Assembly (NCBI RefSeq): GCF_033153115.1
Contig: NW_026889763.1
Location: forward strand, 12,090,001-12,154,000
Source of the DNA: Saccostrea echinata
Lineage: Eukaryota
DNA: 64,000 nucleotides
Reading direction: 5' to 3'
Position numbers and translations under genes: made by a program. Numbering within the stretch: the first letter of the stretch is position 1; each line of letters begins with the position of its first letter. Positions 3,001-36,800 of the stretch are shown here, in pieces. A model generated the notes under the pieces. That model saw only the letters and a list, made by a program, of their open reading frames with translations, ran no database searches and was not told the DNA's origin.

Positions 3001-6000
3001 AATTGTGCAAAAAAGAATAAAAAAACCCTTATTTTTTTTCTAAACATATTTGGTAAATTTAATCTTCTTGGCTCTAAACAAAATTGATCTTAAAGTATTC
3101 CTTATTTTTCCCCTTGTTGGGGGGTGGGGTAATCTTAAATGATATTGTTTCACATGTACCTAAAAGAGGACCCCCAGCCATTATGTTGTCTATGAAACAT
3201 TCAATAATAAATTCAAATTTCATTCCTTATTGGATGACATATGTATAGATATATTGTATGATAACTATTTTTATCGTTCCTTAATATATTAGTTTACATA
3301 TAAATTATAAAATTTGTATCATATATTGGTACAGGTATGTCAAATTGCTCAACGATCAAAGAAAAGAGAGAGGAAATACGCAGAGAACAAAAGAGAAAAT
3401 GGAAACAAAAACAAAAATTATTGAGACCAGCAAAGGAGTTGTCTCAATCTATAGCTGCTGTAAAGAAGAGGCAGCAGAGAGAGAGGCTTGCTCGGAAAAA
3501 AGAGGAAGAACGTGAAAAAAGACAACAAGCTACAGAAAGAAAGCGGAAAAGTAGGGCAGTCCTTAAGAGTAAACAGATTCAAGAGAAATTAAAGAAGGAA
3601 GAAAAACGCAAGAAAAACACAGAGAAACAAAGACGATGGCGAGAAAAGAAAAAAATACTCAAGCAACACAATCTTCCGCTCACACAAGAGGAACAACAAA
3701 TATTTCAAAATAAAATGAGCAAATCCCGTGCAATAAGAAAGTTAAAGGAAGCTCTTCCTAGGACACCTCTAAAACGTATTGCAACTGTAAAGGCGTACTT
3801 GTCCTCAAAGAAATCACCCACGGTTAAGGAACTACAGCGTAGAAAGGTTGTACCATCACCGGAAGAACGCAAAGAATTGGAAATGAATGAATCGGTTATA
3901 CAGGATGTGAAATCTTTCTTGAATTCGGTGAAATTTAAGAGGAGTGATAAGTCGCGGGAAGTCGTCGACATTCTAGCTGCATCTGTATCAGGACCATTAG
4001 TTCAAAAATCTAGGGCCAAAGTTGACCTTGCGAGAAAACTCGGAATGCCAGTTAGAAGGATCTCAAAGGGTGTTCGAATCCGACAACGAGTTTTGCATTC
4101 AGAACAATCATCCTTTGAGTTTACAAAAAGGAAAACAAGGTCAGATAAACTAACTGAAGAAGTTCAAAAAACAGTATATGAATTTTAGTGTCTACCTGAA
4201 AATTCGCGGCACACTGGAAATAAAACTGATGTCAAGCGTGTCCGAATAGGTCCAAAAACTTACTGTAGCCATGCTATTCAAATTCTAGAAAAAACACAGA
4301 GTGAACTGTTCATGTCTTTTAACCAACATTATCCTGAAATTCAGATTTCACAGAGAACATTTGAAAAATGTAAGCCATATTTTGTCCGATCTGCAAGGAA
4401 AAAGGATAGAACAACATGCTGCTGCAGGTATCATCTAGAGAGCAAGTTTTTGTTCAACGCTTTCAAGGCACGTAGAAATCAGTTGGCAAACGATGGGTTG
4501 CTGGACGAAAACACATTTAAGGTTTACAAAACAATTTCGGAATTATGTGAAGATACGATGTGCCATACGGAGGATGGAAATTTACATTTGAAAGACTGTT
4601 TAGAAAGAAGCTGTGAAAAATGCGGTGTTCATTTGCTGAAATTTTGTGACGCTGAATTAGATATGTGTGACGATTCGCCAGATGTAAACTGGAAAAAATT
4701 CGAGTATGTTGACATCAAAACAAAAAATGGCACCAAGAAGAAACTGACATTGGTAGACAAAATAACAAAGTCCGGTGAGATGATAAAGTATTTTAAGAAG
4801 GTGTTGGGGTTTTTCCCAGGTCATCATTTCAGGGCCAAATGGCAAACGGATCAGCTGAAAAATCTTGCCGAAAACTTACCGGAAAACGAATGTTTAACAG
4901 TTCATGATTTCTCGGAAAACTACCGATGTAGTGAGCAGATTGAAATCCAGTCAAACTATTTTCAACGAACTGAGGTTTCCATTCACATTTCACTGATTTA
5001 TAGACATGCTATTTTAGAAGTTGACGGTGTATCGAGCACCCCCGATGACCCTTATATTATTTGTGAACATTTTTTTCTTATTTCTCCTGACGAAAAGCAC
5101 GACCATCATTTTGTTAAATGTGTTCAGAAATTGATATCTGAATATTTGCAGTCCGTCAATTACCCGCTCTCTACAATGCATGAGTTTTGTGACGGATGTC
5201 AAAGCCAATATAAAAGCAGGAACTGTTTGGGAAATCTCGTTCATTCCGTTGACGAGCTTGGATATCAGAAAATGATACGAAATTATTTTGAAAGTAGCCA
5301 TGGTAAAGGACCACAGGATGCAGCGGGAGGTTTACTTAAGAACCAAGCTGATATGGCCGTTATCCGCGGGAAAGCTCAAATAAGATCTGCGCTTGATTTA
5401 TTTAATTTTGCAGAGGCTAAACTCAGGACACCGCGATCTCATGCCTGCAAAAGAAGAATATTTCGATATATTGAAGAAATCCCGATGTTTGAAGAGAACT
5501 TTCAGCCAATTAAAGGAATTCGAGCCGTACATCGAGCAGAAACATCTAAAGACGGGAAAATCATATTACGTAATATGTCGTGTTACTGCGACAGTTGTCT
5601 AGAAGGGGAAAAGTGTGAAAATTTACCTCAAGTTGGACTTTCCAAAGAAATGAAAATGAAGTCGAATAGCGAATCTACACATCAGGATCCTGACATTTCT
5701 GAGGAAGAATATACCGAGGCAGAAACACTCTCAGATTTTATTACTGAAGGAACAGTGTTTGCTGTTCTGTGCACAGGGGATGACGACAATGACTTTTATC
5801 TTTTACAAGCCACATCAAAGAGCAAAACTCTACGGAAAGCCAAAACAGACAAGTGGGGTGGATCGTTTGTTGCAGGGTCAACAGTCATCCACGGAAAATA
5901 TTTTGCTAAAAAGGAAAACTCAATCTTGGACTATAAGCTAATAAAACGCCCAGTAGCCATGGTTCCAAGTGCATCTTTACTGTTTATATGCCAAAATGTA

Positions 6001-9000
6001 TCTATACAAAACGAAATTCTTCACCTAACCGAAGAGGAAAATGAAGATATCCTGGAATGCGTCGATTTGTGCGTGTTAACACACTAAATTGATATTAAAT
6101 GGCATCTAAATATTTTTTAGAATTGATTTCAAACCTGTATTTTTAACAAATTTAAAGAAAGTTAATTAATACGGTAAAGAACAGTTTTGCCTGTTTTTGA
6201 CATGAACGTTTTTCACGCTACATAATAAACATATTCACTCATTAAACTTCCAGTTTCTTTTCATTTTATTTTATTTTATTTTTTTACTTTTAACATAGAA
6301 ATGGATTTAAGGGAACTCTAAATTCTAATGAAAACTTTTTTTTTTACTTTGAGATCTTTTATATAAACGTGTAGATACTTCAATTTCAACAAGGGTACTA
6401 GTACCTAGCTACAACATTCACCAAGAAAAAATATATAAAGATGTTTAAAGAAAATGAAGTATTCGCTCATGTTTACGTACATTCAATTAATGTATTCAGG
6501 GTTTTTTTGGTCAATATTACTTTCATTTTATTTCAAATTGTGTCATTTACTGAAGATTTCCATTTATTCCAACTTACATAAAAGGGCAGATCACTTTAAA
6601 TTCATAAAACATATGGATTAGAACTCTTCAGTATGCAGTTAAACCTTTATGAAAGTTTTACTAAGTCGCTGATTGATATGAGTAATTTTTACGTCCCGTT
6701 TACGTGACGTTAAACGTCATTTATAACGTTACCAAATGTGACACCAACACCGTGCGTAACGTCAAGTTTATATATGTATTATAATGTCTGTTTTTTTTTC
6801 CTCTAGTTAGGGCAATAAATAACAGTTCCAAATTTATTATTATTCAAAGGTAGAAGGAGACAGTTAATCATGTCTTTAATAATTTATCAGAAATAAGTAT
6901 GTTGTATAAGTTAGTCTGTGTGTCGTTCGACGTTCGTCAAACTTTAACATTTTCGACCTCTTTCCCAGTATCACAAGACGAATTTTAACCAGATTTGGCT
7001 TAGTAGGGATTGTTTTGACATGGAAGAATAGAATGGTTGCAGTTAGTCACATTATTCACATATCCATGTAGTGAAGATTAAAGTTTGACCAAATCATGAC
7101 CCATCTTAATAGAATTGGATCACAATAGGGGTCAAAGTTTTATATTTGGATTGTGGAATACGGTGTGATTTGGTAGAATAAAAACTTTAATAAAAATCTG
7201 TTAGCGAGATAACCGAGGGTAGAAGTCAGTACGTCGTATTGATATGCCCATACATGTAGATTTATGTTCACTAGTATTCAAAGCATACATAGGCTAGGTG
7301 AAGGCACAATATGGGATCAGCGTCTTACATACGAAGATATGGGGAAAATTCTTCAAAACTCTCTCTTTTGTAGAGCAGAGAGGCAACAATAAATATGATA
7401 GCATGTATCTCCATGTAGTTTACATTTAAGATTAATTGTCCCCTGACTAGGATGACGTCCTAAAATCATGGAATGTAAACTAATAGCTACCTTTAAGGAT
7501 TCTATCTATATGCTCTGTGAGTATATACCTATTATCTCATGAAAAAGGTTAGGTGAGCACTGTGGCCCATGGGCCTCTTGTTTTTATCCCCATTACACAC
7601 TTACTACTGGCGTTGCCATCTGGCCGGATGTTTAAGGCACAGCAGTCTTCGTTGTAGCACGCAAAAAGATGCAGAGAGTAGCACTGTTCCGAGGGACAGG
7701 AGGCGTGCAGGTCCCGAAAGCGTGGGGGAGGGGTTTTAACACATAACCAGTGTTTCTCCTGACCAGCTGACACACAGTGAAACAGGACCAAGAAAACTGT
7801 TGATAAAAGATGGTGTCCGTATAGTTTAAGGATACATAACACAAATAAAAATTTGATGCCTGGATTAATATATATTTTTTAACTGATTTCGAATAGAAAT
7901 TACATTAATAATAAATCCCTAAGATATAAAGAAATCGTAAGTTTTCTTTGGTGCTTAAATATTCGACTTTGTTTTGTTTTCTACATAATTCTATACAAAA
8001 TTTTGCACATATTTTTAACATTGCGACAAAATCTTACAAAGTTCTCCCACTTTGCCTGGTAAACATCTTTGAATATAAATCTATGAGAAATATTGCTGCT
8101 TTGTGAAAAAAGTTTGTTATTTATCCTTAAAATGCATTGAATTTAAATCGTCAAACGTAATCATACATGTAAGCCTGAGGGAGGAAAGGGATCGAGGCGT
8201 ACATGTTACCGTGATATAATGGCATATATTTCAACATGGGGAAATGCTTGGCATTTACTTTTCTCTGACTTAATCATAGTTATAATAATTATTAAATGGC
8301 AAATTCGGAGAAAAGACGCAATTTAAATTATCAGAACCCAGGTTGCAACAACTTTAGAATTAAAATATTTCGAGTTTAAGTAAGGCATATTATTTTTTCT
8401 AATTAAGCATGATTTCGCCAATAACAATCACGAATTTAACTGTGTCGTAGTTTAAAACGTATCCGGAAATGGAAGGGAGGGTAGCTGCAGGTCTGTATAG
8501 CCTACTGGTCTAAAAAAAAACATTGGTAAAGACAACCAGAGACTTTGATTCTCCATTCCCATTTTTTAGGCCAGTGAGTCACAGCAAGGGTGAGGGTTAG
8601 CAAAAAATATAATAAATTAAATGGACGAATAAATAATTCACATGTATTTTGTTCCAAAAATGTAATTTTTTGCGCCTACACCGCTATGCAGTCCCTTCAC
8701 GACGGCTTCCATATATAAGTGTAATTTAGAAATATAATATTTTTCCAATCTGAGTAAAAATACAAAAATAAGAGAGAAAAGAATATCTGTTTGTTTTGTT
8801 TCAAATTGTGCTTTCAGGTTAATGAGAAAAAGAAATATCAAGATGTTGGTTTAAATGATCTACCAAATATGTGGTCTAGTACACCGGACCCTGGTACACT
8901 TAATAATTTAGAAATACATTGTCTATTGTATGCTGATGATGTTGTTCTGTTATCAACCTCAGCCAATGGTCTTCAACAAAACCTAAACACATTAGATGAA

Positions 9001-19047: not shown

Positions 19048-22000
19048 TTACTTTGACTGCTGTTGGGTTGTACCAATACTACATTGCTTGACCTGGAAAG
19101 AGAATATACAAAAGTTTATCTTAATTTTGTAAATAATGACATTTACATAAATGTTTATTTTGAATAATCTTGTAAATACAGTAAAACTTGGTTATAAAGG
19201 ACTTACTTATAAGGAAATCTCAGTTAATAAGGAAATGTTTCTGAAACCCTTAGGAGACTTTGCACTATGTCCTTATGTTCTTAATATGGATATAAACTGG
19301 GTTATATGGAGTCCCACTGACTTCATTATAACCAAAATTTGTTGTAATTATATTTACATAAATATAAATATTAAATAGGCAATGACATTTGCATATACTA
19401 TATAGATTTTTCTTTTTACATTATTTTGGTCATTTACTTGAAGCGTCAAGAGAACAGGAGAATATTGACCAATACTATAGCCCTCAAGGGGTTATGGCTT
19501 AAACAAACTTGAATCCACAATACACGGGGATTATATCAGTGCAACAGACCTTGTTGTTCTGGAAGAAGATTTTTTTATTATGTAAATTTGATCTCCTATT
19601 TTATTTAGCCTGATCTAAGCTTCAGTGTCCATAATTCATACAAACTTGAATTCATACAATATACAAATCTTCGCATATCAATATGACAGGGTGGCATCCT
19701 GAACTCTCATTTTTTTAATATTCCTACATGTATAAAAACTATATTCCCATGATCTTTGCTTGAATCAAGAATGTGTGACTGGGGCTATAAAAAGAAGCTT
19801 TTAATCTTTTCTAGCTCAGCAGTTCTTGAGAAGAAGTGATCCCACCCTATTTTTGCCTTTTCTTGATCATCTCCTCTTGGAAGAAAGCATGGCCCTTCAT
19901 TTGAACAAACTTAAATCCCCTTCAACCAGAGATGCTTTCCAAAAGTGAATGAATTTAATCCCTTGATTCAAAAGAAGACGATGAAAATGGGAAAAGTTTA
20001 AGATGACGATAGCAACAAAGAGGACATTAATAGTAAACAAATTTTGATCAGAAAAGCTCCCATGAGCATTTGGCTTTGGTGAGCTAAAGAGCATACATGT
20101 ACTTAGTTACAAAAAAATATTTGTAGACACTGACCCTTGTGGCAAACCTAAGGGAACTGAGGGTTTCCTCGAAACACTCCTCCTTGGGGGACACATTTAC
20201 AATCACCACAGTCTTACTGCTGTTTTCTCCCAGGGAGTTTTGGAGAAGGTATGTCAGTTTAGACTCCCTATATGGGATAAATCTATCCTGTGACAGGAAT
20301 TTCATCTTTAATCATTTTGACTAATACAGATTCACGTACATGCAATATGTGTAAAATCTAATAAACAATTTAATTTTGTTCAGAAAATAAAGTCTAAATA
20401 ATAATAATGCTGAGAAGTGATTATATTGCTCTTCACATTTTAATCTTAAACTGTGAAATCCTGATCAGACATTCCCCATGGATCAATGGCTTCATACTAT
20501 TATGAAATGGAGTAATGTTATTTATTTAGTCTGACAATGTTTTTACACTAACCTTATTAGCGATGGCCATGAAGACTTTACCCAGTGTATTACAACTCTT
20601 GCCGATGGATTGAGCCTCTTTAAGTCTGGCTCCCTCTAATCCTGATTCCTTTAGTCTCTCACTGCCATCCAAATCCACGAAGTTCAAGGTTCCTGGAAAA
20701 TGTAAGGATTTTCCATGAATAATAACCATAAGCATCAACAGATTGTGGTTAAAATATGAAAAATTAATCAATTAACATATTTAAAATCTAGTCTTACCTG
20801 TACAAGCCTCATGTGTGTTTTTGTTGACCCCTGAGATGTGGAGTCTGAATACAGTTTGGCTGCGAGATGATCGCTCGTTATACTTAACCTCTAATACATC
20901 ACGGTTGTGTGAGGCTTTACGTAGTAATTCACGCACCTAAATATTATTTTTACAACATATGTATGGACATACTAATAAAAAATTACAAAATATTTATACA
21001 GTCCATGTAGAGGAAGGGTTGTATGGATGTGTAGTGAAGTTTACACCAGAATCCTTGGCTATATATTTAATTTGAATTTTAATATGGATACCATAATTGT
21101 CTCATGTATAAGTTGTGGAATTTTAAGTAAATGTATATTGTACAGATGATACAGGTACATATAGTATACGTAGGTGTGACCATTTCATTTTGAGAGAGAG
21201 ATAAGGAGAGATAATGAGATAGAGAGATAAAGAGATATATAAGGAGAGAAACTTGCCCACTAAATACCTGTTCCTCTGATGTGACTGTCACAGATGTTAA
21301 ATCGGTCACCATCACATCTTTCTTATCCACTGACCCCGTCATCATGGACATCTTGATTTGGTGCTTTAGGTCATCACTGTTATTTCCAAGGAGATCTCGA
21401 ATTCTCTCTTTGTAAATTTTTAGGAATGAAGCCTCTAATTCATACTGTGAAAATATGAATATAAAAACTCATATAAATCTGTCAGCCAAAATTTGTATGG
21501 TAAACAGACAGCATATGAATGTACAATGCAAAATGTTCACAGAGAGGGATTGAATAGCAGACAAACTCTACTGGAGCCCTAACATATCTCCCACGGCACC
21601 ATCAGTTTTATGTGTTACATTATTAAATAGTTCTAGATACTGATAACATTCCACTTTCTTCCAACCACAGACAGTTTCTTGTCAGGGACCAACCTACACC
21701 CAAAGTTTGAAGAGACATGATCTCTCTCAGAGCAAATCACTGAGCCATAATACATTAGGGCTCAAAATAATTGATATGGCCTGCTGGTCTGGGGCCAGTA
21801 AATTTTGGATTGAGCTAGTGCTTTGTAGAAAGCATGTGTCATTGGGACCAGTGATTATTTCATTTTTTTATGCATATCAACATCAATTCACAGTCAGGCT
21901 AGTTAACTAGACAATTTGTGCATCCACTAGGTTCTATTTGGGTGCGAACAATTCCTTGTTTTGGTAGGTTGTACATGTACTATGATTAAATAACGCGATG

Positions 22001-25000
22001 TAAATTCAATACCACAAATATTTTTAAGAACAAATTTTCTTGAGGAGTATATTCTTAAACACTGTAATATTGTTTTTAAATGCTGTTTCATCATAGTGAA
22101 TAAGATATGATGCATCATAAAAACAAGAAATATGTGAAGTAAACAATTAAGAACATACACAACGTAGTTTGAAATTTATTGCCTTTTTCCCTGGAGTTGA
22201 AGAGTTCCAATACTTAACAAAACTGTGCTATATTTTAATGCCTATATAATATGCTGTTGTACACTTCTTCTAAAACAAGTTTGGATAAACAAAACATCTA
22301 GAATTTATGTTTAGTAATTTTTGTATATTTTCCCTTGAATTATACAAGAATTTTCATCAATCAAATTTTTTTTAAAACCCCTGATAATGCATGCTAATTT
22401 TTTGTCTACGAACATCTGATGGCATTTTAATCTTAAATTAAGAAGATCCTGAAAAATTATCAGTTGGTAAGATATGTTGCATATGTCCTTAAGGGCTATT
22501 CAGAATCAGAAAGTGGCACTACTAAAGGTGATTAAGAATAAAGATTCGGTGGTAATGAAATATGATTTATTTTAACTGTTGGTTATTAAAATTGGAAAAT
22601 AAACTCATGGTTACATTAAATGTAGTCTGATTTTTATCCCCTTTGCAACAAAGTTGGAGTGAATGTAGTAATATGCTTGTGTATGTTTAGGTGAATGTTT
22701 GCATAACGGAATTTACGCAAGGAATAATTTATATTGGGATTGATGTGCTCTTTTGCGAGTGGATGCTCTGCCTTGCAATGCCTTTGTTTGGTCTAGTCTT
22801 TTTCACACCTACTAGCCCAGTGGGACAGTGATAGTTATTGACTGACTAGTAAAATTTTAAGTTGATAGCCCAAGTGACCAGTGAAAAAAAATATCATTTT
22901 GAGCCCTGTTACATGTACTAAAGCTTTAACGTAGAACCTACGTCGTATGACGTCATAGTTAAGTGAACGAATGCAAGACTGTCTCAGCTAATGAAAATAC
23001 ACAACTGTGATAAGTGAATGACATGCAACTATTTTGAAGGAATGCAAAGTTGCAAAGAAATCTTCAGTCGACTATTAAATAGTGCAATATCTTGATGATA
23101 TATATCCTCTGAGTCTTAAATTTATCAAAGATTGTGTTTAATGTTTGTAATGTCTATTATGAAATGAAATGTATTTATTTTCATAATTATTTCTTAATTA
23201 TTTACTTGGATTTTTAGTGGTTCGTGTATAATAATAACATTTCGCTAAAATATTAATTTCTAAAGAGAGATTTTCATTTTTTGATAACTATTCATATTGT
23301 AAATCTGAAAGTATCACCAAAACATTCATTTAATCATGAAATCCTGTGTAAGTGCAAAAAGGTCAACATGTCTAGTATTGATAAAAAAAACACCTCTCTC
23401 ATTAGTTTGCGGGGTATGGTATATATTTTAATCATTTTTCGTAATCATTTGGGTATGTTCTTCATCATATTAAGGATTGAAAACACTGTCACAAAGACTT
23501 TTGCGAAATATTTACAAATTTAGGGTTGTAGATGGACTAAAAAATCCTTTAAAAAATACTGAGCACATTTGCGTATATTTATTGAAATGTGGATTTAATC
23601 TTTTATGTCAATTTAAGAATAACCATTTTAATTTTTAGTAATAGTTCTAACCATTCTTAGTTAAAGTCTATAAACAAAGGTGTTTGAAGAAGTATTTTTG
23701 TGATTTTCTGTATTCTCCTTATGACCATGTACCCCTAAAATGGCTGAAAATTATAGTTGCCGTGTATAATAATCATTCTAAATTGCACCGGCTGCACTAC
23801 ATTCAATAACATGGAAATATGCCATGTATTTTTAACTGATTAATAAGCAAGTGCTAATTACTCATTTAGAAAATCCTGTGACAAAGACTTTTCCGACATA
23901 GGTTCTACCTTAAACACATTCTTTTCATTTTTAGATCCATCTTCACTGACTTAATACACTAGATAATGCACAATATAATCCAAACTCCTACATGTACACT
24001 ACTACATGTACACTACTTGTCCAAACACCTACATGTATAACAACTATTTGTACTTGCATGAGAACAAAAATAAAGCCACCTACCTGCCAACCTTTGCTGA
24101 TCAGGTCCTGGGTACTCTCAAATATCTGAACCACAGCCCTGGGGATAATTCCAGCCTGCTCCGGGCTGAACTGCAAAGGTCCCTCCATTGTGTGTGTCTT
24201 ACCTGAGCCAGTTTGTCCATAGGCAAAAATACAGACATTGTACCCATCTAAAGCACTCTGTAGATGATACTATGTATATAAATTACTCATTCTGCATAGT
24301 AAACATGTATATTACACAATTCTCTGATATTTACAATGTGTTTTTTTTTCTCCTTTTTAGTGTGAAATAAATAAGGCTCTGTAAAGTTTGAGTTTTAAAG
24401 TAATTCTGTGAAAATTAAATGGTACGTCTCCTCCCCCAACCCCCTCTTGTGCAATCCTAGCTGTTTCAATTTTTTCTATCCCAAGGCATAGTATTTATCT
24501 ATTACCTTGACTTTCATATCACATTTCTGCTCATTTGAAATAAATCCCATATACTTTAATTCAAATTTCTATTTTGTTGCAATTGTGGTGAGAGAAAATA
24601 AAGTCAGTTAAAGCACTTAATCACTCATCTGTTTTCCCCTTACCCTCTTACAGGGATGTCATCCCTAGAATCCCCTTACACTCTTACAGGGAGGTCATTC
24701 CAAGAAAAATACCAGCAGAGGGGGGAAGGGGGAGGGAGATAAATGGTGTCAACTGCACCAGGCAGATATATGTATCCGTACCTGTACAAATTGACATATT
24801 TCCTCAAACACCTGAGCTTGGGTGCTGTCAGGGTTAAATACCCTGTCAAAGGTAAACTTGTACTTTCCTTTCCTGTTTTCTGTCAAACAACCCTATATGA
24901 TAATAACATGAAAATGATAGTAAACTCAGACTGGTGAAAACTACAAGGTACTTTATTATTTTTATCTAACATGATATTTTTTTTCAATCAAACTCTTAAA

Positions 25001-25219
25001 ATCATCTCTTAATGAGGCACTTTACAATCGTATACACTGTATTTTATAGTTAAGAGTTATATCCACACTGACCTCACTGGGTGGAGCATCTGAAATTTTT
25101 TCCAGCTCCAGTATCTTGCCGTCAATGTCTGAGAGATCCATGTGATGTATTATTCCATCATTTCCCAGTAATTCATCTCCAAGCAGAGGACGAACTCGAC
25201 AAAACACTTGGATATTTCC
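19048..25219 (-). CDS. Kinesin-14 motor-domain paralog (tandem partial duplicate of the KIFC1-like gene); 5' exons not identified
   Basis: Exons 25219-25073, 24892-24782, 24257-24084, 21444-21268, 20936-20798, 20692-20553, 20287-20135, 19092-19048 match parent exons 8-15 in phase. All are GT-AG with no stops or frameshifts; indels are -6, +9 and +3 nt. P-loop GQTGSGKT intact; SSRSQ, DLDGSE and IGKSC variants. Confidence 0.85.
19480..20087 (+). mobile_element. Degenerate Helentron-type element with ~166-bp-satellite-like repeats
   Basis: 3' end GAAAAGCTC..TGAGC.TTTGGCT..GGTGAGCTAAA and AACAAACTTGAATC repeats shared with 32231-33881. Confidence 0.7.
22930..23909. mobile_element. Kolobok-type non-autonomous element
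   Basis: TTAA on both sides; TIR CGTAGAACCTACGTCG / CGACATAGGTTCTACC. Confidence 0.75.
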
Positions 25220-28161
25220 CTATAAATTAATAATAATAATAAATATTTGTAATGATAATTATAGCATTCATAGAATTACAATCTTTTAAATATTTTGTAA
25301 AAAAAAATCTACACGATTGCAAAGAAATATTTCACATCCACTGAGTTATGTTTAGCATTGATCAATTTTACTAAATCCTTCTTGTTTTCTACAATTTTGT
25401 ATCAATTTAACTTCAGTGCTCTTAGCACAATTTAGCTGTATACAAGTCCCGCACAATCTCTTTTTTAGATGTATAGCTTGACTCAGCTATATAGCTTGAT
25501 ATAGGTCTTCAAAATACAGTTGAATTTCGGTATCTCGAACACTGATATCTCGATTATCATGGATATGTCGAAGTGATTTGGAAGTCCCAAATACTTATTC
25601 TTTAAGTATTTTACCCTCATATCTCGAATCCTCAGATATCACAAAGTTTTTTCTTGGTTCAATCAAGTTTGAGATAAGGATTTGACTTAGATTTATTTAC
25701 CTATCTTATCATACTTTTTTCTTAAATTTGAATTTTTTTTCAGTTACTATGTATAAGTTGCACTTTGGTGCAGTGAAAGTTTTCACCTTAGTACTTTCTA
25801 AATACAATGCATGAAAAAATTGCTCATCAAAATGTCTCCTTTATAGATTTTGCACTCAAAATTCTAAATGTTTTGGGGCTATATAAAAGAACTGATTTGT
25901 GTTCCAATCAATTGGACTAAGCAATTGATTTGTAAATAAAAGGAGGTCAATTCTGATCAAAAATACAGGGTTGTTCCTAAGAATTGAAATAGAAGGGAAC
26001 ATTAAAAAAGTAGAAGGGGGTTTAGGGTTCCACTCTCACAGGGAGTTGAGGAATACACTGTACCAGAATAACCGGGGAATTACATCATTATAGGCAGGGA
26101 GATTTCCCGGCCCCCAGGTCTTCGGGACAACCCTGATAATTGATTAGTAATAATTCAGCACAATTTTTAGCAATCATACTTATTCATGCCCAAACACACT
26201 CACAAGATGTATACAGTTATCCAAACAATGGAAATACATCTTTTGCTTAAAAGTGTTCAAATGCTGCAATGTTTAAATTATCTTTGATTTGGACATGTAT
26301 GAGTAGTTGTATACTTGGGATTTTTTAGTATATTTCTTGTAAAAACATATTTGTAAAAGACTGCAATTAAATATTTTAAATATCTATATTTAATAAAGCT
26401 ATACAACTAATTTAAGTATATAGCTAAATCAAGAGATTGTGCCAACCAATATTACAGCAAAACCTGACACCAGAATTATGATTCTGAGGTTCTGACTGGA
26501 AAGCAAAAAACCCAGAACATATGTTATGTGAATATTTGGACCATGATAATTGTTCAGGGCTGCGTTCAAGATGGTAGCAGCTAACAAAGCAGCTAGGTGG
26601 TAGATATCTAGCTCTATTGAATAGACATGCAGCTCGCCTAGCCACCAGATGTTAGATTTAAGATACAAATATCATAGTTGTAACTAATTTGGAACAAATT
26701 GAGCTGAATATGTATTTGAATATGTATATGTAAATAAACATTTAATTCACTTAGATGGAGAAAACAATCACAATTAATTTTTGTTCATATCAAATAAATC
26801 TCATGTGATCCGAGAGGGTAGCTTAAGAATTTAAGCCATTTTGATTTGGTACCTAGCATAAAAATAATTTTTTATACGTAGTGGCTAGGATAGCATATCT
26901 TTCAAGATCGTAGTTTTACGTAGAGGCTATGTAACAGCTATGCTCTTGAAGGCAACCCTGCCTGGTACATGTGTTTCCACCCTGAATTTGCCACAAAAGT
27001 TATCATTGGACTTGTAGGTCCTGTAAAGATGCAGAATTGTGTTTTCTGGTTAGTAGCATGTCTTTTTTTCTCATAGAGTAAAAAGTTAGGATTCTCTACA
27101 AGGTAGGCCCTTGATTGGAAATAAACTCTTTTATTTTGAATAAAACGGGTTACACTCATGTTTTTAACCTCTGACTCTGCCATGCTTTGTAGGGTTAACT
27201 CATCCAAAGTCCAATAAACATGTGCCAAAATCCCCAACTTGAAGTCCAGCCCATAGAAACATAAATATTAATCAAAACTGTAAACACTAAAACAGTTGTA
27301 ATCGGTAATAGAAGGATGAACGGAACTATCAAAACCCAATACGGTTTAACGTATTTTATTCCGATTTCCGAGATATTATAAAATATTCATATATGTAATT
27401 TTAATTTAATACAAAGTTTCAAACGATTAAAATCAATGGAACTGGTTTAGGCAGCATATTGGAAAGTGTATGTATGACATAAACGTTCATATACAGAGAT
27501 TCAAACAATCTGGATACAAATAAAATTCTAGACCTTCAGACTCAGTGTCCTGATTTCATGCACGGCCTCAGGTACTTGTGGACAGGACCTTCCATCTTCC
27601 CGATATTCCGGGGCTTGTTCACGTTGTTGGACGTTCCTTCACAAATCATATTTATTTCACATATTCATCATGTAGAATAGAATAGAATAGGATTTATTAC
27701 CAAATCAGGACCCAATGGGCATAAACATATAACATGTATAATTACAGATAAGATAACAGACAGAATACAACATATAATGAAGAGCAATTCTTCCCATTTA
27801 GTACATTGGTGGTGTTTTGAGTTTCATATGTAGACATAGGTTGTCTTGATTTAAGATATACCACAGGGAAAGCCCCCCCCCCCCCCCTAAAAAGATATAT
27901 ATTCAATTCTTTATTGACCAATTAAGGGCCCTCATGGGGCAAAAAGAAAGTACATTGTTAAAATGTATATAATGATTATGATCATACACACGAAATACAA
28001 TATACATACACATAAGAGGGAAAGAATTGCTTGATTGATAGAAAAGACATACAAGTAGGGGAATACCCAAAATATTTTATATGAACATAAGACTTGTTTT
28101 ATAGGTATATATATAGTACATATATATATATGCATTCATTACTAAACCATATACTTGAAAG

Positions 28162-28454
28162 NNNNNNNNNNNNNNNNNNNNNNNNNNNNNNNNNNNNNNN
28201 NNNNNNNNNNNNNNNNNNNNNNNNNNNNNNNNNNNNNNNNNNNNNNNNNNNNNNNNNNNNNNNNNNNNNNNNNNNNNNNNNNNNNNNNNNNNNNNNNNNN
28301 NNNNNNNNNNNNNNNNNNNNNNNNNNNNNNNNNNNNNNNNNNNNNNNNNNNNNNNNNNNNNNNNNNNNNNNNNNNNNNNNNNNNNNNNNNNNNNNNNNNN
28401 NNNNNNNNNNNNNNNNNNNNNNNNNNNNNNNNNNNNNNNNNNNNNNNNNNNNNN
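28162..28454. other. Assembly gap (N run)
   Basis: Run of N characters. Confidence 1.
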
Positions 28455-30667: not shown

Positions 30668-30974
30668 AAGTTTTTCAAAAAAAAATTGTTATACAAGAGA
30701 AACAGCCTTGAATTGACCAGTAAGTAAATATTTTTGACATTTCACACATTCAATCTCAACTACAAAATAATTTCACAAACCAAAATTATGTAATATTTTA
30801 TTTTGTAATGGAATCAGGTGACATTGAAATATTTGAGGGATAGAAAGGAAGAAAGAGTATACAGCAGAAAATTAGAAATGATATAATTTTACAATTGGTT
30901 TTTGATCCAAGATTCCTATATACAAAGCAGGACAAATATGCACATCACTAATAACACACAGACATGCAAGACCT

Positions 30975-31394
30975 TAGGAGTGAAACGGTTCACCGCGGTA
31001 TCGATGCACCGCGGTATTTTTTCTCGGTTTGATACACGGTGCAAAATCTCTAATTTTCGGTTCGGTTCATTTTTCGGTCGGGATCGTTATTCAATCGGGT
31101 TTGGCATAAGGTATAACACGTTACTCAGAATAAATAAGTATAGAAAACGTAAATTTTTGATGACTGATAGCTTGTAAAATAATTTTTGACAGTCAAATAA
31201 TTTTAATCAATTTCTTCTAGTCAATTTGCAAATAAAATTCGTAAAATATGTGACTAGATTTAGAAAAAGAAAGCATAAAACAACGTAGAATTTGTTTCCT
31301 TCTATCAATATGTATCGTATCGAAAATAACCGAACCGAGACAAAATTATACAATACGTATCGAACCGTGAAGGAGGTGTATCGTTTCACCCCTA
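30975..31394. mobile_element. hAT-like MITE
   Basis: TIR TAGGAGTGAAACG / CGTTTCACCCCTA; perfect 8-bp TSD CAAGACCT; CGGTT/AACCG-rich subtermini. Confidence 0.9.
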
Positions 31395-31924
31395 CAAGAC
31401 CTTAATGCAGCTTATTTTTGTGGTTTTAAAACATACATGTATTTGGGCTGAAAATTCAGTTTATATATTAGGGAATCTGAATATCAATACTTGTAGTTCA
31501 TTATAATTATGGGTGTAAAGAGTCACCAAATTGGGCACACATGCTCTGTACCCACAAATTAACTGCTTTGTATCATGCAAATAAAAAAATGAGCATCAAC
31601 AAATTTAGACAGCATTAAAAACCAACACCTAGGTAGGCAAAAACTGATAAAAATATTCCTTCTGACATTTTAAAAACTCTGGTTTAAAGGACTAGTACAT
31701 GTACTTACATGTTAACGTGCAATGAATTTTACCTAAAAACGATTTCATCATAGCCGTAAAGTAGCTACAATAATTCATGAACAGAACATTTGAAGTGTCT
31801 TTGCAGCAACATTATGGACTATTTGAAATGAAATGAAAATCTCTTGACAATACACATGTTCTACAAAGGTTTTCTACAATGTTTCTACAATGTGAATAAT
31901 ATTTCTTTATTCTACAATCAGTTA

Positions 31925-33675
31925 TTATTTTGATTTCTTTTGGGCTGTACCAATACTACACTGGTTAACCTGAAAAAAAAAAGTAAACAGATACAAAAAT
32001 GTATATCATGATCCTGAAAATAACTAGTACATAAATATTAAACACACATTAAAATACATTATTAAAATATTCTTTTACTATATTTTGGTCATTCAGTTGA
32101 AAAATTTATCAAAAAGGAAAAAAAAAAAGAAAAACAAGATGTGTTTGTGAAACACTGATGCCCCCATATGGTAGCTTATGGCAAAGGTTAAAGTTTCTCA
32201 AATGCAAGTCAAAATCCAGGCCAAAAGATAAACAAGAGGCCCAGGGGCCACATCGCTCACCTGAGCACTATGGCTAGGAAAATGCAGAAATCAGTTCAGT
32301 CTTGAAAGGTTGAAAAGTTTAAATAAAAAATTGGTTCGGGGGGGGGGGGGGGGGGGGGTCATGAATTGAACAAATTTGAATCTACATTATCTGAGGATGC
32401 TTCCATTTTAATATGACCAATCATGGCTTTGCTGTTCTTGAGTAGAAGAGTTTTAAAGATTTAACCTATGTGTTCCTATGTAAAACTTTGATCGCCCATT
32501 GTGGCCCCACCTGACCCCTGGGGGTCATGATTTGAACAAACTTGAATCTACATTATCTGTGGATGCTACCATATAAATATGACCATTCATGGCTTTGCTG
32601 TTCTTGAGAAGAAGATTTTTAAAGATTTTTCCTATATATTCCTATGTAAAACTTTGATCGCCCATTGTGGCCCCACCCGACCCCCGGGGGTCATGATTTG
32701 AACAAACTTGAATCTACACTATCTGAGGATGCTTCCATGTAAATATGACCAATCATGGCTTTGCTGTTCTTGAGAAGAAGATTTTTAAAGATTATTCCTA
32801 TATATTCCTATGTAAAACTTTGATCGCCCATTGTGGCCCCATCCGACCCCGGGGGGTCATGATTTGAACAAACTTGAATCTACACTACCTGAGGATGCTT
32901 CCATGTAAATATGACCAATCATGGCTTTGCTGTTCTTGAGAAGAAGATTTTTAAAGATTTTTCCTATATATTCCTATGTAAAACTTTGATCGCCCATTGT
33001 GGCCCCACCCGACCCCCGGGGGTCATGATTTGAACAAACTTGAATCTACACTATCTGAGGATGCTACCATATAAATATGACCAATCATGGCTTTGCTGTT
33101 CTTGAGAAGAAGATTTTTAAAGATTATTCCTATATATTCCTAGTATGTAAAACTTTGATCGCCCATTGTGGCCCCACCCGACCCCTGGGGGTCATGTTTT
33201 GAACAAACTTGAATCTACACTATCTGAGGATGCTTCCATCTAAATATGACCAATCATGGCTTTGCTGTTCTTGAGAAGAAGATTTTTAAAGATTTTTCCT
33301 ATATATTCCTATGTAAAACTTTGATCGCCCATTGTGGACCCACCCGTCCCCAGGGGGTCATGATTTGAACAAACTTGAATCTACACTATCTGAGGATGCT
33401 ACCATATAAATATGACCAATCATGGCTTTGCTGTTCTTGAGAAGAAGATTTTTAAAGATTATTCCTATATATTCCTATGTAAAACTTTGATCGCCCATTG
33501 TGGCCCCACCCAACCCCCGGGGGTCATGATTTGAACAAACTTGAATCTACACTACCTGAGGATGCTTCCACATAAATTTCATATTTTCAAGCACAGTGGT
33601 TCTTGAGAAGAAGATTTTTTAATGATGCCATTAATTTTTCCCGATTTCTTAATTATCTCCCCTTGGAAGAAGGCA

Positions 33676-33719
<44 letters not shown>

Positions 33720-33722
33720 ACT

Positions 33723-33762
<40 letters not shown>

Positions 33763-33823
33763 GAAGAAGATGAAATGTGAAAAGTTTACAACAACAACAA
33801 CAACAACGACGACAATGACGACA

Positions 33824-33865
<42 letters not shown>

Positions 33866-36800
33866 TGGCTCAGGTGAGCTAAAAATGTTGGTACCCAAAG
33901 AAAGGTCTTGCCTCGAGGAATATACCTGTGAAATTTGAAAGCCCTAGCTGCAACTGTTCAAAAGTTATGGCGAAGGTTAAAGTTTTTTAAAAGTAAGTAA
34001 AATGTCAAGGTCAAGGCTGTTGGAATCCAAAGGAAGGCCTTGCCACAAGGATTACATATGTGAAGTATGAATGCCCTAGCACCAACCATTCAGAAGTTAT
34101 GCCAAGGTTAAAGTTTTTTGAAAGTAGGTCAAACTCCTACGTCAAGGTCAAAGTTGTTGGTATCCAAAGGAAGGTCTTGTCACAAGGATTACATATGTGA
34201 AGTATGAAAGCCCTAGCACCAACCATTCAAATGTTATGGCCAAGGTAAAAGTTTTTCAAATCTAGGTCAAACTCCTAGGTCAAGGTCAAAGAGGTTGATA
34301 TCCAGAGGAAGGTGATGTCACAAGGATTACATATGTGAAGTATGAAAGCCCTAGCATCAACCATTCAAAAGTTATGGCCAAGGTTAAAGGTATTCAAAAG
34401 TAGGTCAAACTCTTAGGTCAAGGTCAAAAGGTCAAAGTGGTTGATATCCAGAGGAAGGTCTTGTCACAAGGATTACATGTGTGAAGAATGAAAGCCCTTG
34501 CTCCAACCGTTCAAACGTTATGGCCAAGGTTAAAGTTTTTCAAATTAGTTCAAACTCCTAGGTCAAGGTCAAAGAGGTTGAAATCCAGAGGAAGGTCTTG
34601 TCACAAGGATTATATATGTGAAGTATGGAAGCCCTAGCTCCAACCGTTCAAAAGTTATGGCCAAGGTTAAAGTTTTTCAGAAGTAGGTCAAACTCCTAGG
34701 TCAAGGTCAAAGGGTCAAAGAGGTTGATATCCAGAGGAAGGTCTTGCCACAAGGAATACACATGTGAAGATTGAAACCCCAAGCACCAACTGTTCAAAAG
34801 TTATGGCCAAGGTTAAAGTTTTTTCTAAGGAGGTCAATTCCAAGGTCAAGGTCAAAAGGTCAAAGTTGTTGGTATCCAAAGGAAGGCCTTGTCACAAAGT
34901 ATACACATGTGAAGTTTGAAACCCCAAGCACCAATTGTTCAGAAGTTATGGCCAAGGTTAAAGTCTCAAAAATTTTTGCAAAACTGGGTCAAACTCCAAG
35001 GTCAAGGTCAAAAGGTCAAATATGATGGTACCGAAAGAAAGGTCTTGTCACGAGGAATACACACATGAAATATGAAAGCCATAGCTCCAACCAATCAAAA
35101 GTTATGGGCAAGGTTAAAGTTGACAACAGACAGACAAACAGAAAGACAGGACAAAAACAATATACCCCCGGAATCTTTCGATCCGGGGCATAAAAAAGCA
35201 TTGTCTTTAAAACAAAGGAAAGAAAATTTGTAATTTACCAAAGAAAGAAGCTTCTAATTTACAACAGTAGACACTGACCTTTGTGGCAAACCTAAGGGAG
35301 TTGAGGGTCTCCTGGAAACACTCTTCCTTGGGGGACACATTGACAAACATCAGAGTCTTACTGTTCCCTCCCAGAGAGTTCTGGAGGAGGTATGTCAGCT
35401 TAGACTCTCTATACGGGATGTATCCGTCCTATAAAAGATTGTAAAGACCAATAATCAGAAAACATTGATTAACGAGGAAAAAAAAGCTACTGATTCCAAT
35501 GAAAGATTATTTTTACATAATCAATCACCAGATTCACTAATCTTATAGAATGCATTCTGGAATAAGGACATTTTCTTATCCACTTAAAATGTGCTGTAAG
35601 AATAAAAATGGCATCTAACATAAAGTTAAGGTGATTAATAATGAAAAAGTTCTCATAAAGTGCCACGGCAGCAAGACATGAAAATTACCCGCTAATGCAG
35701 AACTGAAGAAGCATTTAAAACCTTGCAAGATTATGCTTTATAAAATAAAGGTCTAACTTTTGATTATAATCAGCAAAATCACATCAGAAGTATGTGGCAA
35801 CTGATTTCAACCACTGATTGATTTTAAAAAAATAAACCCATGTCCCTTCACTAAGGACCATTTCAGATACATGCAATATGTGTAAAATACAAGTAGCAGA
35901 GTTTAATATCCATTGCATCCAAGTCCGGTAAAAGGACATTGTTCCAGTTTTTCTCCCGAATTTAGGTAAAAATTTCCAAATTGCAAGCATATTGAATTTT
36001 TTGGTGCTTTTCATATAAAACAAAACTTTAATTTTGAGATAATAATGATTCATAAAGATGTAAAAGGGGAATAAGCCTACACTCTTGCTCTTTAATCTCC
36101 AGTTAAACATACATGTTGTACAAGTCATCAACATTTCCAAATTTTGCTACTTTATTGATTTAAAATTCCCTACTGATAGGGTACAGGACCCTGTACAAAA
36201 AAGGGCCAATTAAGGACCGTCTATACACTAAAGAGAAAGATTTTTTGGACATTGAGAAAATTATAGTGTGTAAAGGTCTAAATATTGAGCTTATCTATTA
36301 CATTTTCAACACAGGGTACCTTGCATTTACCCATAGGAAAAATGTTCAGACAATGAACAACTGATAAAGAGAAATCTCTGTTGTTAACTTAAGTGGGCAA
36401 AATACATACAAGTGAAGTGTTCTATATATTCATCTTGGCCTATTAAAATGTTATGCTTGGTTTGATCACAAATTAAGTAATAAACTGAACATTTCAATTT
36501 ATTTTATTGTAAATCAAAGGGCAGATTACTCTTTCTGCATAAAAATACCAAGAACTCTTCAGTGTGCAGTGTATAGAGGGCTCTTAAGCCCTGAGTATAA
36601 TCATTAAAACAAGAAGTTAATTTGTAAATTAAAATGAAAGTCTAGATGATAATAGCAATAGCTGAATATTTGTACATGTATTGTTCTTTGTTTTTCCAGA
36701 TATAAAAGTAAAACAATTAATTAAAAGGCAAAATCCCATATACATGTACAACAATTTTGTTCTTGAAGAAATATAAAATCTCTGTAAAACAAAATTCCTC

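Follow-up and report, generated by a model that had tools for sequence, protein, structure and literature searches.

KIFC1 is a motor important in spindle assembly and sperm head shaping. In kinesin heads, an asparagine of helix alpha4 (N255 in kinesin-1, N650 in Kar3, N600 in Ncd) connects the backbone of switch II with alpha-tubulin (PMC4383081, PMC3000839). Mutation of this 'linchpin' in kinesin-1 (N255K) lowers microtubule-stimulated ADP release up to 1000-fold (PMC4383081), and the corresponding mutants Kar3 N650K and Ncd N600K are uncoupled and act dominantly (PMC3000839). The Kar3 mutant is dominant-negative in yeast, and a KIF5A mutant inhibits the wild-type motor in vitro (PMC4383081, PMC3000839). 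Vik1 and Cik1 are without nucleotide-binding elements and work via a coiled coil with Kar3 (PMC4338441). Here we analyzed 64,000 nucleotides (nt) of the rock oyster Saccostrea echinata (assembly GCF_033153115.1, contig NW_026889763.1, positions 12,090,001 to 12,154,000 of the forward strand), referred to below as the window. It holds a full-length KIFC1-type gene, named A, and a second, lower copy, named B, which is the subject of this study. From its sequence, we propose that B is a real, Saccostrea-specific gene: a tandem KIFC1 duplicate without exons 2-7 that is selectively retained and encodes a probable uncoupled, non-motile head. We rate this explanation slightly above even.

A motif scan found the kinesin motifs twice in the window, both times on the minus strand, and BLASTN matched 19048-25279 to 31925-40918. 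A script-spliced model of the 15 coding exons of A (45798-31925) agrees residue for residue with XP_061178033.1, the S. echinata 'carboxy-terminal kinesin 2-like' protein. A is a KIFC1-type kinesin-14 with tail, stalk, neck and C-terminal motor. B lies on the same strand, 6.7 kb downstream of the stop codon of A. Its exon borders were placed by eye on aligned sequence and then checked by script. The joined B protein served for alignments, dN/dS and trees, and searches were made with single exons or with database proteins. The features of both copies are:

31925..45798, minus strand: parent gene A, full-length KIFC1 / carboxy-terminal kinesin 2-like, 15 coding exons, 692 amino acids, identical to XP_061178033.1
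45207-41238, minus strand: tail and stalk of A, exons 2-7
40861-31925, minus strand: motor of A, exons 8-15
27169..27183, minus strand: predicted first coding exon of B (MAESE), ATG GCA GAG TCA GAG, then donor GTTAAA, phase 0
25220..25356, minus strand: leftover of the A intron preceding motor exon 1 (homology to 40862-40992), marking the 5' limit of continuous duplication
25073..25219, minus strand: B motor exon 1 (beta1, RVFCRVRP; GNIQVF...), phase-0 acceptor, in-frame TAG directly upstream
24782..24892, minus strand: B motor exon 2, -6 nt compared with A
24084..24257, minus strand: B motor exon 3 (P-loop GQTGSGKT), 3 of 58 amino acids different, synonymous divergence (dS) 0.18, homogenised with A
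21268..21444, minus strand: B motor exon 4 (LKIYKER), +9 nt insertion, also in the S. cucullata orthologue
20798..20936, minus strand: B motor exon 5 (switch I, NERSSRSQ)
20553..20692, minus strand: B motor exon 6 (switch II DLDGSE, L11, helix alpha4 IGKSC)
20135..20287, minus strand: B motor exon 7 (L12/alpha5), +3 nt insertion, also in the S. cucullata orthologue
19048..19092, minus strand: B last exon, stop TAA
18051..19047, minus strand: B 3' flank, weak colinear homology to the A 3' flank 30725-31924

Every acceptor of B is AG and every donor GT, the joined frame is open over 362 codons, and the stop codon stands at the same position as in A. The first-pass annotation of this DNA had described eight motor exons with GT-AG sites and open frames, indels of -6, +9 and +3 nt as the only exon changes, and heavily rearranged introns, and each of these statements was borne out by comparison with the parent. 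The three length changes fall in exons 2, 4 and 7, respectively. The introns differ greatly in length (A/B: 214/180, 408/524, 474/2639, 541/331, 1481/105, 1430/265 and 3309/1042 nt), and their alignable parts are 56-67% identical, compared with 87% for the coding sequence. The motor domain of B is 83% identical to that of A, with 10, 5, 3, 8, 11, 10, 9 and 4 amino acid differences in exons 1-8 (60 in total), and both copies share the exon-intron layout and the C-terminal end. Between 25357 and 31924, no homologue of the parent exons 2-7 (tail, stalk) was found. A six-frame search of the whole 923-Mb assembly yielded two copies of the exon-B4 type, namely A and B.

The introns also contain repeats. 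In the last intron of A there are two large minisatellites, at 32354-33577 (166-bp unit, 7.4 copies, 94% matches) and at 33886-35121 (138/283-bp unit, 8.7/4.3 copies), which explain much of the length gap between the last introns (3309 and 1042 nt). Past the donor of motor exon 4, A has (AG)19.5 at 39103-39141 and B has (AGAGATAA)n at the homologous site 21197-21237. This microsatellite was inherited via the duplication and has diverged since.

The in-frame TAG just upstream of B motor exon 1 requires an upstream exon. The predicted start exon of B (MAESE) resembles the first coding exon of A at 45798-45784 (ATG GCA GAA TCA CAG, then GTTATT; MAESQ) in 17 of 19 nt, donor included. The S. cucullata orthologue described below starts with MAEPE, and these five residues are followed directly by the motor. 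Of 20,000 Markov-shuffled versions of the 6.4-kb spacer, 0.07% contained a mini-exon that matched MAEPE at 4 or more of its 5 residues and had a phase-0 GT (P=0.0007). When the surroundings of the two start exons were aligned locally, nothing past the 19-nt core was found, and the score of 15 did not exceed that of shuffled sequence (13.9 +/- 1.6). The flanking DNA is too diverged to align, and it is the test of peptide plus donor that supports the exon. As judged from this match, the start exon of B is a relic of exon 1 of A. The predicted product of B is head-only, about 367 amino acids long, and consists of MAESE and the motor without neck, stalk or tail.

Two further observations concern the region upstream. 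The ratio of observed to expected CpG in the 300 nt before the start codons is 0.91 for A (45799-46098) and 0.97 for B (27184-27483), compared with 0.49 for the whole window; these small counts give a weak hint of unmethylated, promoter-like 5' regions in both copies. A run of 293 N (assembly gap or masked) lies at 28162-28454 of the window, about 1 kb upstream of the predicted start codon of B, so that the promoter region of B is incomplete.

The first-pass annotation had suggested looking for orthologues in related bivalves, and an intact copy was found in Saccostrea cucullata, apparently beside that species' own parent gene. Among 1.84 billion representatives, the best match of exon B4 was the 364-amino acid protein XP_062591906.1 (P0001), an automatic RefSeq prediction named 'carboxy-terminal kinesin 2-like'. 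This protein and the S. cucullata parent isoforms XP_062591904.1 and XP_062591905.1 have consecutive accessions and are all recorded on a contig of 940,897 bp. Based on this equal contig record and the adjoining accession number, the tandem order appears to be conserved. The orthologue has both insertions of B (+3 and +1 amino acids), and 23 derived residues are identical in the two proteins, including LKIYKER, VLEVKY, SRSQT, IG[KR]SC and the RF before IPYRESKLT. In a maximum likelihood (ML) tree of exons 4-8 the B copies form a pair (support 100/100) within a Saccostrea clade that includes the two parents (96/91), and the oysters group together (100/99). No B-type protein from Magallana, Ostrea or any other taxon was among the best matches of the protein database search. 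Because the orthologue shares these features, the tree pairs the B copies and no B-type protein was seen elsewhere, the sequences place the duplication in the Saccostrea lineage and before the split of S. echinata and S. cucullata. A search of 71-226 amino acid fragments with exon B4, aimed at pieces derived from transcripts, returned only a parent-type fragment, from another oyster. In the literature on oyster KIFC1 and Saccostrea kinesin, nothing on the B gene was found.

One of the S. cucullata parent isoforms is itself unusual. XP_062591905.1 (P0297, 'isoform X2', 614 amino acids) shows scattered point substitutions relative to X1 in the exon 3-4 region, two adjacent substitutions (SHKH for SPEH) that equal the B-type sequence, and a frameshifted tail at its end. 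It may represent a further partial copy of the motor exons in S. cucullata or a model that mixes copies.

The residue changes in B were placed on a reference alignment of 237 kinesin-14 motors from animals and fungi, in which 113 columns are at least 97% conserved. At these columns S. echinata B departs 15 times and S. cucullata B 18 times; both the parent and the median of the 237 motors have 0 departures. The columns at which both species depart are given below as parent residue > S. echinata B / S. cucullata B (one residue where both are the same), followed by the conservation among the motors:

LEIYNE Glu: E>K, 236/237
LEIYNE Asn: N>K, 235/237
T219: T>V, 236/237
Switch I His: H229Q, 237/237
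Switch II Ala: A257D / A257G, 237/237
Alpha4 'linchpin' Asn: N279G, 237/237
Alpha4 Leu: L282C, 237/237
Beta8 Leu: L>V, 236/237
Beta8 Phe: F>I / F>L, 235/237
L86: L>F / L>T, 234/237
A354: A>T, 227/228

The changes first noticed in the window, LEIYNET>LKIYKER, the switch I change, DLAGSE>DLDGSE, INKSL>IGKSC and LGGNSKT>LGENSSKT, were all found again. This includes the loss of the asparagine that, when mutated, leaves ATPase activation uncoupled from microtubule binding (PMC4383081, PMC3000839). Other elements are kept in both species: the P-loop GQTGSGKT, RxRP, the switch I (SSR) Arg, Gly and Glu of switch II (DxxGSE), and the Glu and Tyr of the closed-switch hydrogen-bond network. The L12/alpha5 segment is identical in the two species and IPYRESKLT is kept. 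The earlier statement that the P-loop exon differs at 3 of 58 residues and that the switch Arg, the Glu and IPYRESKLT remain was likewise correct. Among the nucleotide motifs N1 (GQTGSGKT) and N4 (RxRP) are intact, N2 reads SSRSQ (ASRSQ in S. cucullata) and N3 reads DLDGSE (DSGGSE in S. cucullata).

Single B exons match PF00225 with E values of 2e-20, 9e-07 and 2.7e-18. Pfam Kinesin and Microtub_bd both match, and the orthologue reaches 322 bits with Pfam Kinesin over profile positions 1-326 of 327 (parents 378-380 bits). The structure prediction proposed in the first-pass annotation is available for the S. cucullata orthologue, where the AlphaFold2 (AF2) model has a kinesin-14 fold with a predicted TM-score (pTM) of 0.79. 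Foldseek comparison of this model with Ncd, Kar3 and KIFC1 resulted in TM-scores of 0.70-0.79 normalised to the query and up to 0.89 to the target, and the closest solved structures were KIFC1 5WDH, Ncd and Kar3. By sequence and modelled fold, B is thus placed in the kinesin-14 motor family, without the tail-stalk-neck architecture of that family.

The 60 amino acid differences between A and B were polarised, with the result that 50 are derived in B and 1 is derived in A. The pairwise ratio of nonsynonymous to synonymous divergence (dN/dS) between A and B is 0.21 (NG86, all exons), 0.28 (ML) or 0.17 (exons 4-8). We compared this with a neutral simulation in which the parent lineage takes synonymous changes only and B evolves neutrally at the observed dS. 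The simulated neutral ratio was 0.33-0.40 (standard deviation 0.06-0.08), and no more than 0.3% of runs came down to the observed value. An open frame survived in 0.07% of runs when all exons were considered, and in 0.6-1.5% when exons 4-8 were taken by themselves. On these sequence comparisons neutral drift of B is rejected. Since dN/dS is below the simulated neutral value, purifying selection has purged roughly half of the amino acid-changing mutations on B, a constraint far weaker than that on A, yet not neutral.

The integrity of the gene points in the same direction. All 30 of 30 splice-site bases, the start codon and the donor of the start exon (exon 0) are kept in B beside heavily diverged introns, and all 3 coding indels are in frame, 2 of them common to the orthologue. 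Stops, frameshifts and lost splice sites are absent from S. echinata B, and none is seen in the S. cucullata protein. Exons 4-8 hold derived states shared by both species, so that their intactness cannot be put down to repair through conversion from the parent. The earlier view that B is not a dead pseudogene is upheld by the intact orthologue in a second species, the dN/dS below neutral and the preserved splice sites and start exon. The branch lengths for exons 4-8 are 0.18 for the B stem, 0.071 for S. echinata B, 0.35 for S. cucullata B and 0.01-0.02 for the parents; B evolves about 7-18 times faster than A. Parent divergence amounts to 6 of 213 positions between the two Saccostrea species and 10 of 213 between S. 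echinata and Magallana, small counts which suggest that the species split occupies a large part of the time since duplication. If so, the same small counts suggest that much of the change in B came early and that S. echinata B has been fairly constrained since.

The first three motor exons have a different history. Synonymous divergence between A and B is 0.23, 0.05 and 0.18 in exons 1-3, and 0.88, 0.73, 0.42, 0.54 and 0.77 in exons 4-8. Of the 58 residues of exon 3, paralogues within a species differ at 3 (S. echinata) or 4 (S. cucullata), and orthologues at 6 (A-A) or 11 (B-B). In a tree of exons 1-3, S. cucullata B groups with S. cucullata A (89/83), and in each of the two species exons 2-3 carry species-specific residues common to both paralogues. 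By this sequence pattern, exons 1-3 have undergone concerted evolution by exon-limited gene conversion with the parent. The introns beside these exons have escaped homogenisation, and hence the conversion tracts must be short and confined to exons. In S. echinata, B seems to have been brought back to the state general among oysters, and A would then be the donor and B the recipient. The S. cucullata parent exon 3 has several states otherwise found only in its B, and this exon contains 6 of the 18 motor differences of that parent; here the pattern suggests transfer in the opposite direction, from B to A. In the first-pass annotation, the close match between the P-loop exons of the two copies had been taken as a sign of selected nucleotide binding. 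This argument does not stand, because dS is also low in exons 1-3 as a result of gene conversion. A 'specially conserved' P-loop exon was therefore rejected, as its synonymous sites are homogenised too. Nonetheless, the P-loop is intact in both species.

We propose the following course of events. The whole KIFC1 gene would have been duplicated in tandem, and coding exons 2-7 (tail, coiled-coil stalk) would then have been lost, leaving the exon-1 copy (MAESE) to be spliced in phase 0 directly onto the eight motor exons. The resulting head should still fold and probably binds nucleotide, since the P-loop, RxRP, the SSR Arg, the switch II Gly and Glu, and the closed-switch Glu and Tyr are kept. 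Microtubule binding is probably retained as well, because L12/alpha5 is identical in both species. By analogy with known mutants, microtubule-stimulated ADP release and ATPase would be largely lost through the changes of the alpha4 Asn to Gly, the switch II Ala to Asp or Gly and the switch I His to Gln. Glycine has no side chain for hydrogen bonds to the switch II backbone and alpha-tubulin; the switch II change would put an acidic or Gly residue next to the gamma-phosphate-sensing Gly. Without neck, stalk and tail there would be no dimerisation, power stroke or microtubule cross-linking. B would thus be a monomer whose head binds both nucleotide and microtubules, with no coupling between these activities. 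We regard it as a probable non-motile 'pseudo-motor', because the residues that couple microtubule binding to ATP turnover are replaced while the gene is kept intact in two species. Its most likely role would be that of a non-motile microtubule- (or tubulin-) binding head that occupies or competes for kinesin sites, and such competition would modulate KIFC1-dependent spindle or manchette organisation.

Several observations weigh against this explanation. The terminal branch of S. cucullata B is five-fold longer than that of S. echinata B (0.35 vs 0.071), and the two B copies may be under different regimes. Substitutions in exons 4-8 of B fall equally on family-invariant and variable columns (18.6% vs 19.2%); this seems to fit a loss of motor-specific constraint with general constraint remaining, and partial drift fits too. 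The S. echinata B protein was not found among database proteins of 200-637 amino acids, though the S. echinata parent protein is present, and no AATAAA was found within 980 nt of the B stop codon. The AF2 model of the orthologue is of low confidence at the P-loop and the switch loops and is not diagnostic there. Finally, the uncoupling of B is drawn by analogy from studies of Asn>Lys and Asn>Ser, and B has Asn>Gly. The first four of these points, the loss of many invariant catalytic and coupling residues and the evident conversion from the parent in exons 1-3 would suit a non-functional unprocessed relic, kept open by chance and by occasional conversion repair and now decaying. We consider such a relic unlikely. 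Exons 4-8, with their shared derived states, were not repaired by conversion and yet are open in both species, and in one lineage a neutral sequence would have stayed free of stops in 0.6-1.5% of runs and would show a dN/dS of 0.33-0.40 instead of 0.17. The conserved splice sites, start codon and exon-0 donor and the three in-frame indels, two of them common to the orthologue, also speak against it.

There is likewise little probability, in our estimate, that B is a working microtubule-stimulated ATPase, a kinesin-14 head acting as a monomer with changed kinetics. The Asn, Ala, His and Leu that B has replaced are present in 237/237 kinesin-14 motors, microtubule activation is abolished when this Asn is substituted in kinesin-1, Ncd or Kar3 (PMC4383081, PMC3000839), and Gly has no side chain with which to bond the backbone of switch II and alpha-tubulin. 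A working head would nevertheless agree with the intact P-loop, RxRP, SSR, switch II Gly and Glu, Glu/Tyr network and L12/alpha5, with the predicted motor fold, and with a head-only KIFC1 paralogue in Pomacea (P0107, 370 amino acids) that retains all catalytic motifs. The B exons might also serve as an alternative 3' motor cassette of A, if read-through splicing joined the last stalk exon (donor after 41238, phase 0) to the acceptor at 25219 (phase 0). The product would be a KIFC1 of full length whose head is degenerate and which could form heterodimers with the normal isoform. B lies on the same strand 6.7 kb past the A stop, the phases are compatible and B exon 1 has no in-frame ATG of its own. 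We regard such a cassette as very unlikely, given the conserved start exon (MAESE/MAEPE), the separate 364-amino acid gene modelled by RefSeq in S. cucullata, the AATAAA 13 nt past the stop codon of A, and the lack of any B-type protein longer than 364 amino acids among those seen. A long shot is that B represents an early animal counterpart of yeast Kar3-Vik1, a degenerate head working with the neighbouring KIFC1 through read-through splicing or direct association. If true, the motor would be asymmetric, with one head active and the other serving as a microtubule anchor, and the two-way exon conversion would show how non-catalytic kinesin partners originate from motors.

Elsewhere in the window, two long uninterrupted open reading frames with ATG start lie on the plus strand at 3337-4188 and 4312-6087 (283 and 591 amino acids), both without a Pfam match. 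They are unusual for an intron-rich genome and may belong to a transposon or a single-exon gene.

Motor-derived pseudo-enzymes are known from very old cases such as Vik1 and Cik1, the origin of which can no longer be seen in the sequence. B is young, at 83% parent identity, and the order of events can therefore be read: loss of tail and stalk, changes of coupling residues common to two species, and continued constraint. It would allow the alpha4 'linchpin' Asn and switch II to be studied in a natural experiment, and it is a possible endogenous regulator of KIFC1. It also appears to return sequence to its essential parent by conversion, as seen in the B-like residues of the S. cucullata parent exon 3. 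If B is not expressed, it would merely be a slowly dying duplicate.

Compared with known systems, B is closest to KIFC1 / HSET / carboxy-terminal kinesin 2 (kinesin-14A, here A), with which it shares motor sequence, exon-intron structure, C-terminal end and fold. It differs in the loss of exons 2-7 and in its departures at 15 of 113 invariant columns, compared with 0 in A. Like Vik1/Cik1, B has a kinesin-like head that is probably non-catalytic yet microtubule-binding and stands beside a catalytic kinesin-14 (PMC4338441). However, Vik1 and Cik1 have no detectable sequence similarity to motors and act only as coiled-coil heterodimers with Kar3, whereas B keeps the P-loop and 83% parent-motor identity and has no coiled coil (the orthologue, 364 amino acids, is all motor). 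Membership of B in this group was rejected, as a nucleotide site is present and stalk exons are absent. For the same reasons the suggestion of the first-pass annotation that B is a Vik1/Cik1-like partner of its neighbour failed: B has an intact P-loop and neither neck nor stalk, and Vik1/Cik1 need a long coiled coil and are without a nucleotide site. Of that interpretation as a whole, selective retention and the loss of coupling residues stand, and the Vik1/Cik1 partnership and the P-loop-exon argument do not.

The diverged maize meiotic-drive motors KINDR and TRKIN resemble B in being lineage-specific, fast-evolving kinesin-14 duplicates (PMC7462060). They are functional motors that move knob repeats, whereas B has no stalk or cargo-binding part and its coupling residues are degenerate. 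No connection of B with a repeat or a drive haplotype was seen, though no test aimed at one was made, and the driver-like and germline-specific readings of the first-pass annotation have neither support nor counter-evidence here. A 370-amino acid 'carboxy-terminal kinesin 2-like' protein of the apple snail Pomacea canaliculata (P0107) is an independent head-only molluscan KIFC1 paralogue of separate gastropod origin. It has 12 departures at near-invariant columns and keeps SSRSH, DLAGSE, INKSL and LGGN; stalk loss from KIFC1 duplicates may thus be recurrent in molluscs. With the mutants Kar3 N650K, Ncd N600K, kinesin-1 N255K and KIF5A N256S, B shares the replacement of the alpha4 Asn, which is Gly in both species. 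These mutants bind nucleotide and microtubules, lose stimulated ADP release and are in some cases dominant (PMC4383081, PMC3000839). They carry Lys or Ser, whereas B is natural, fixed for millions of years and has Gly; in addition, its switch I, switch II and LGGN motifs are altered and it has lost the dimerising stalk. In summary, these comparisons describe B as a real, selectively retained but degenerate head-only paralogue of the kinesin-14 family.

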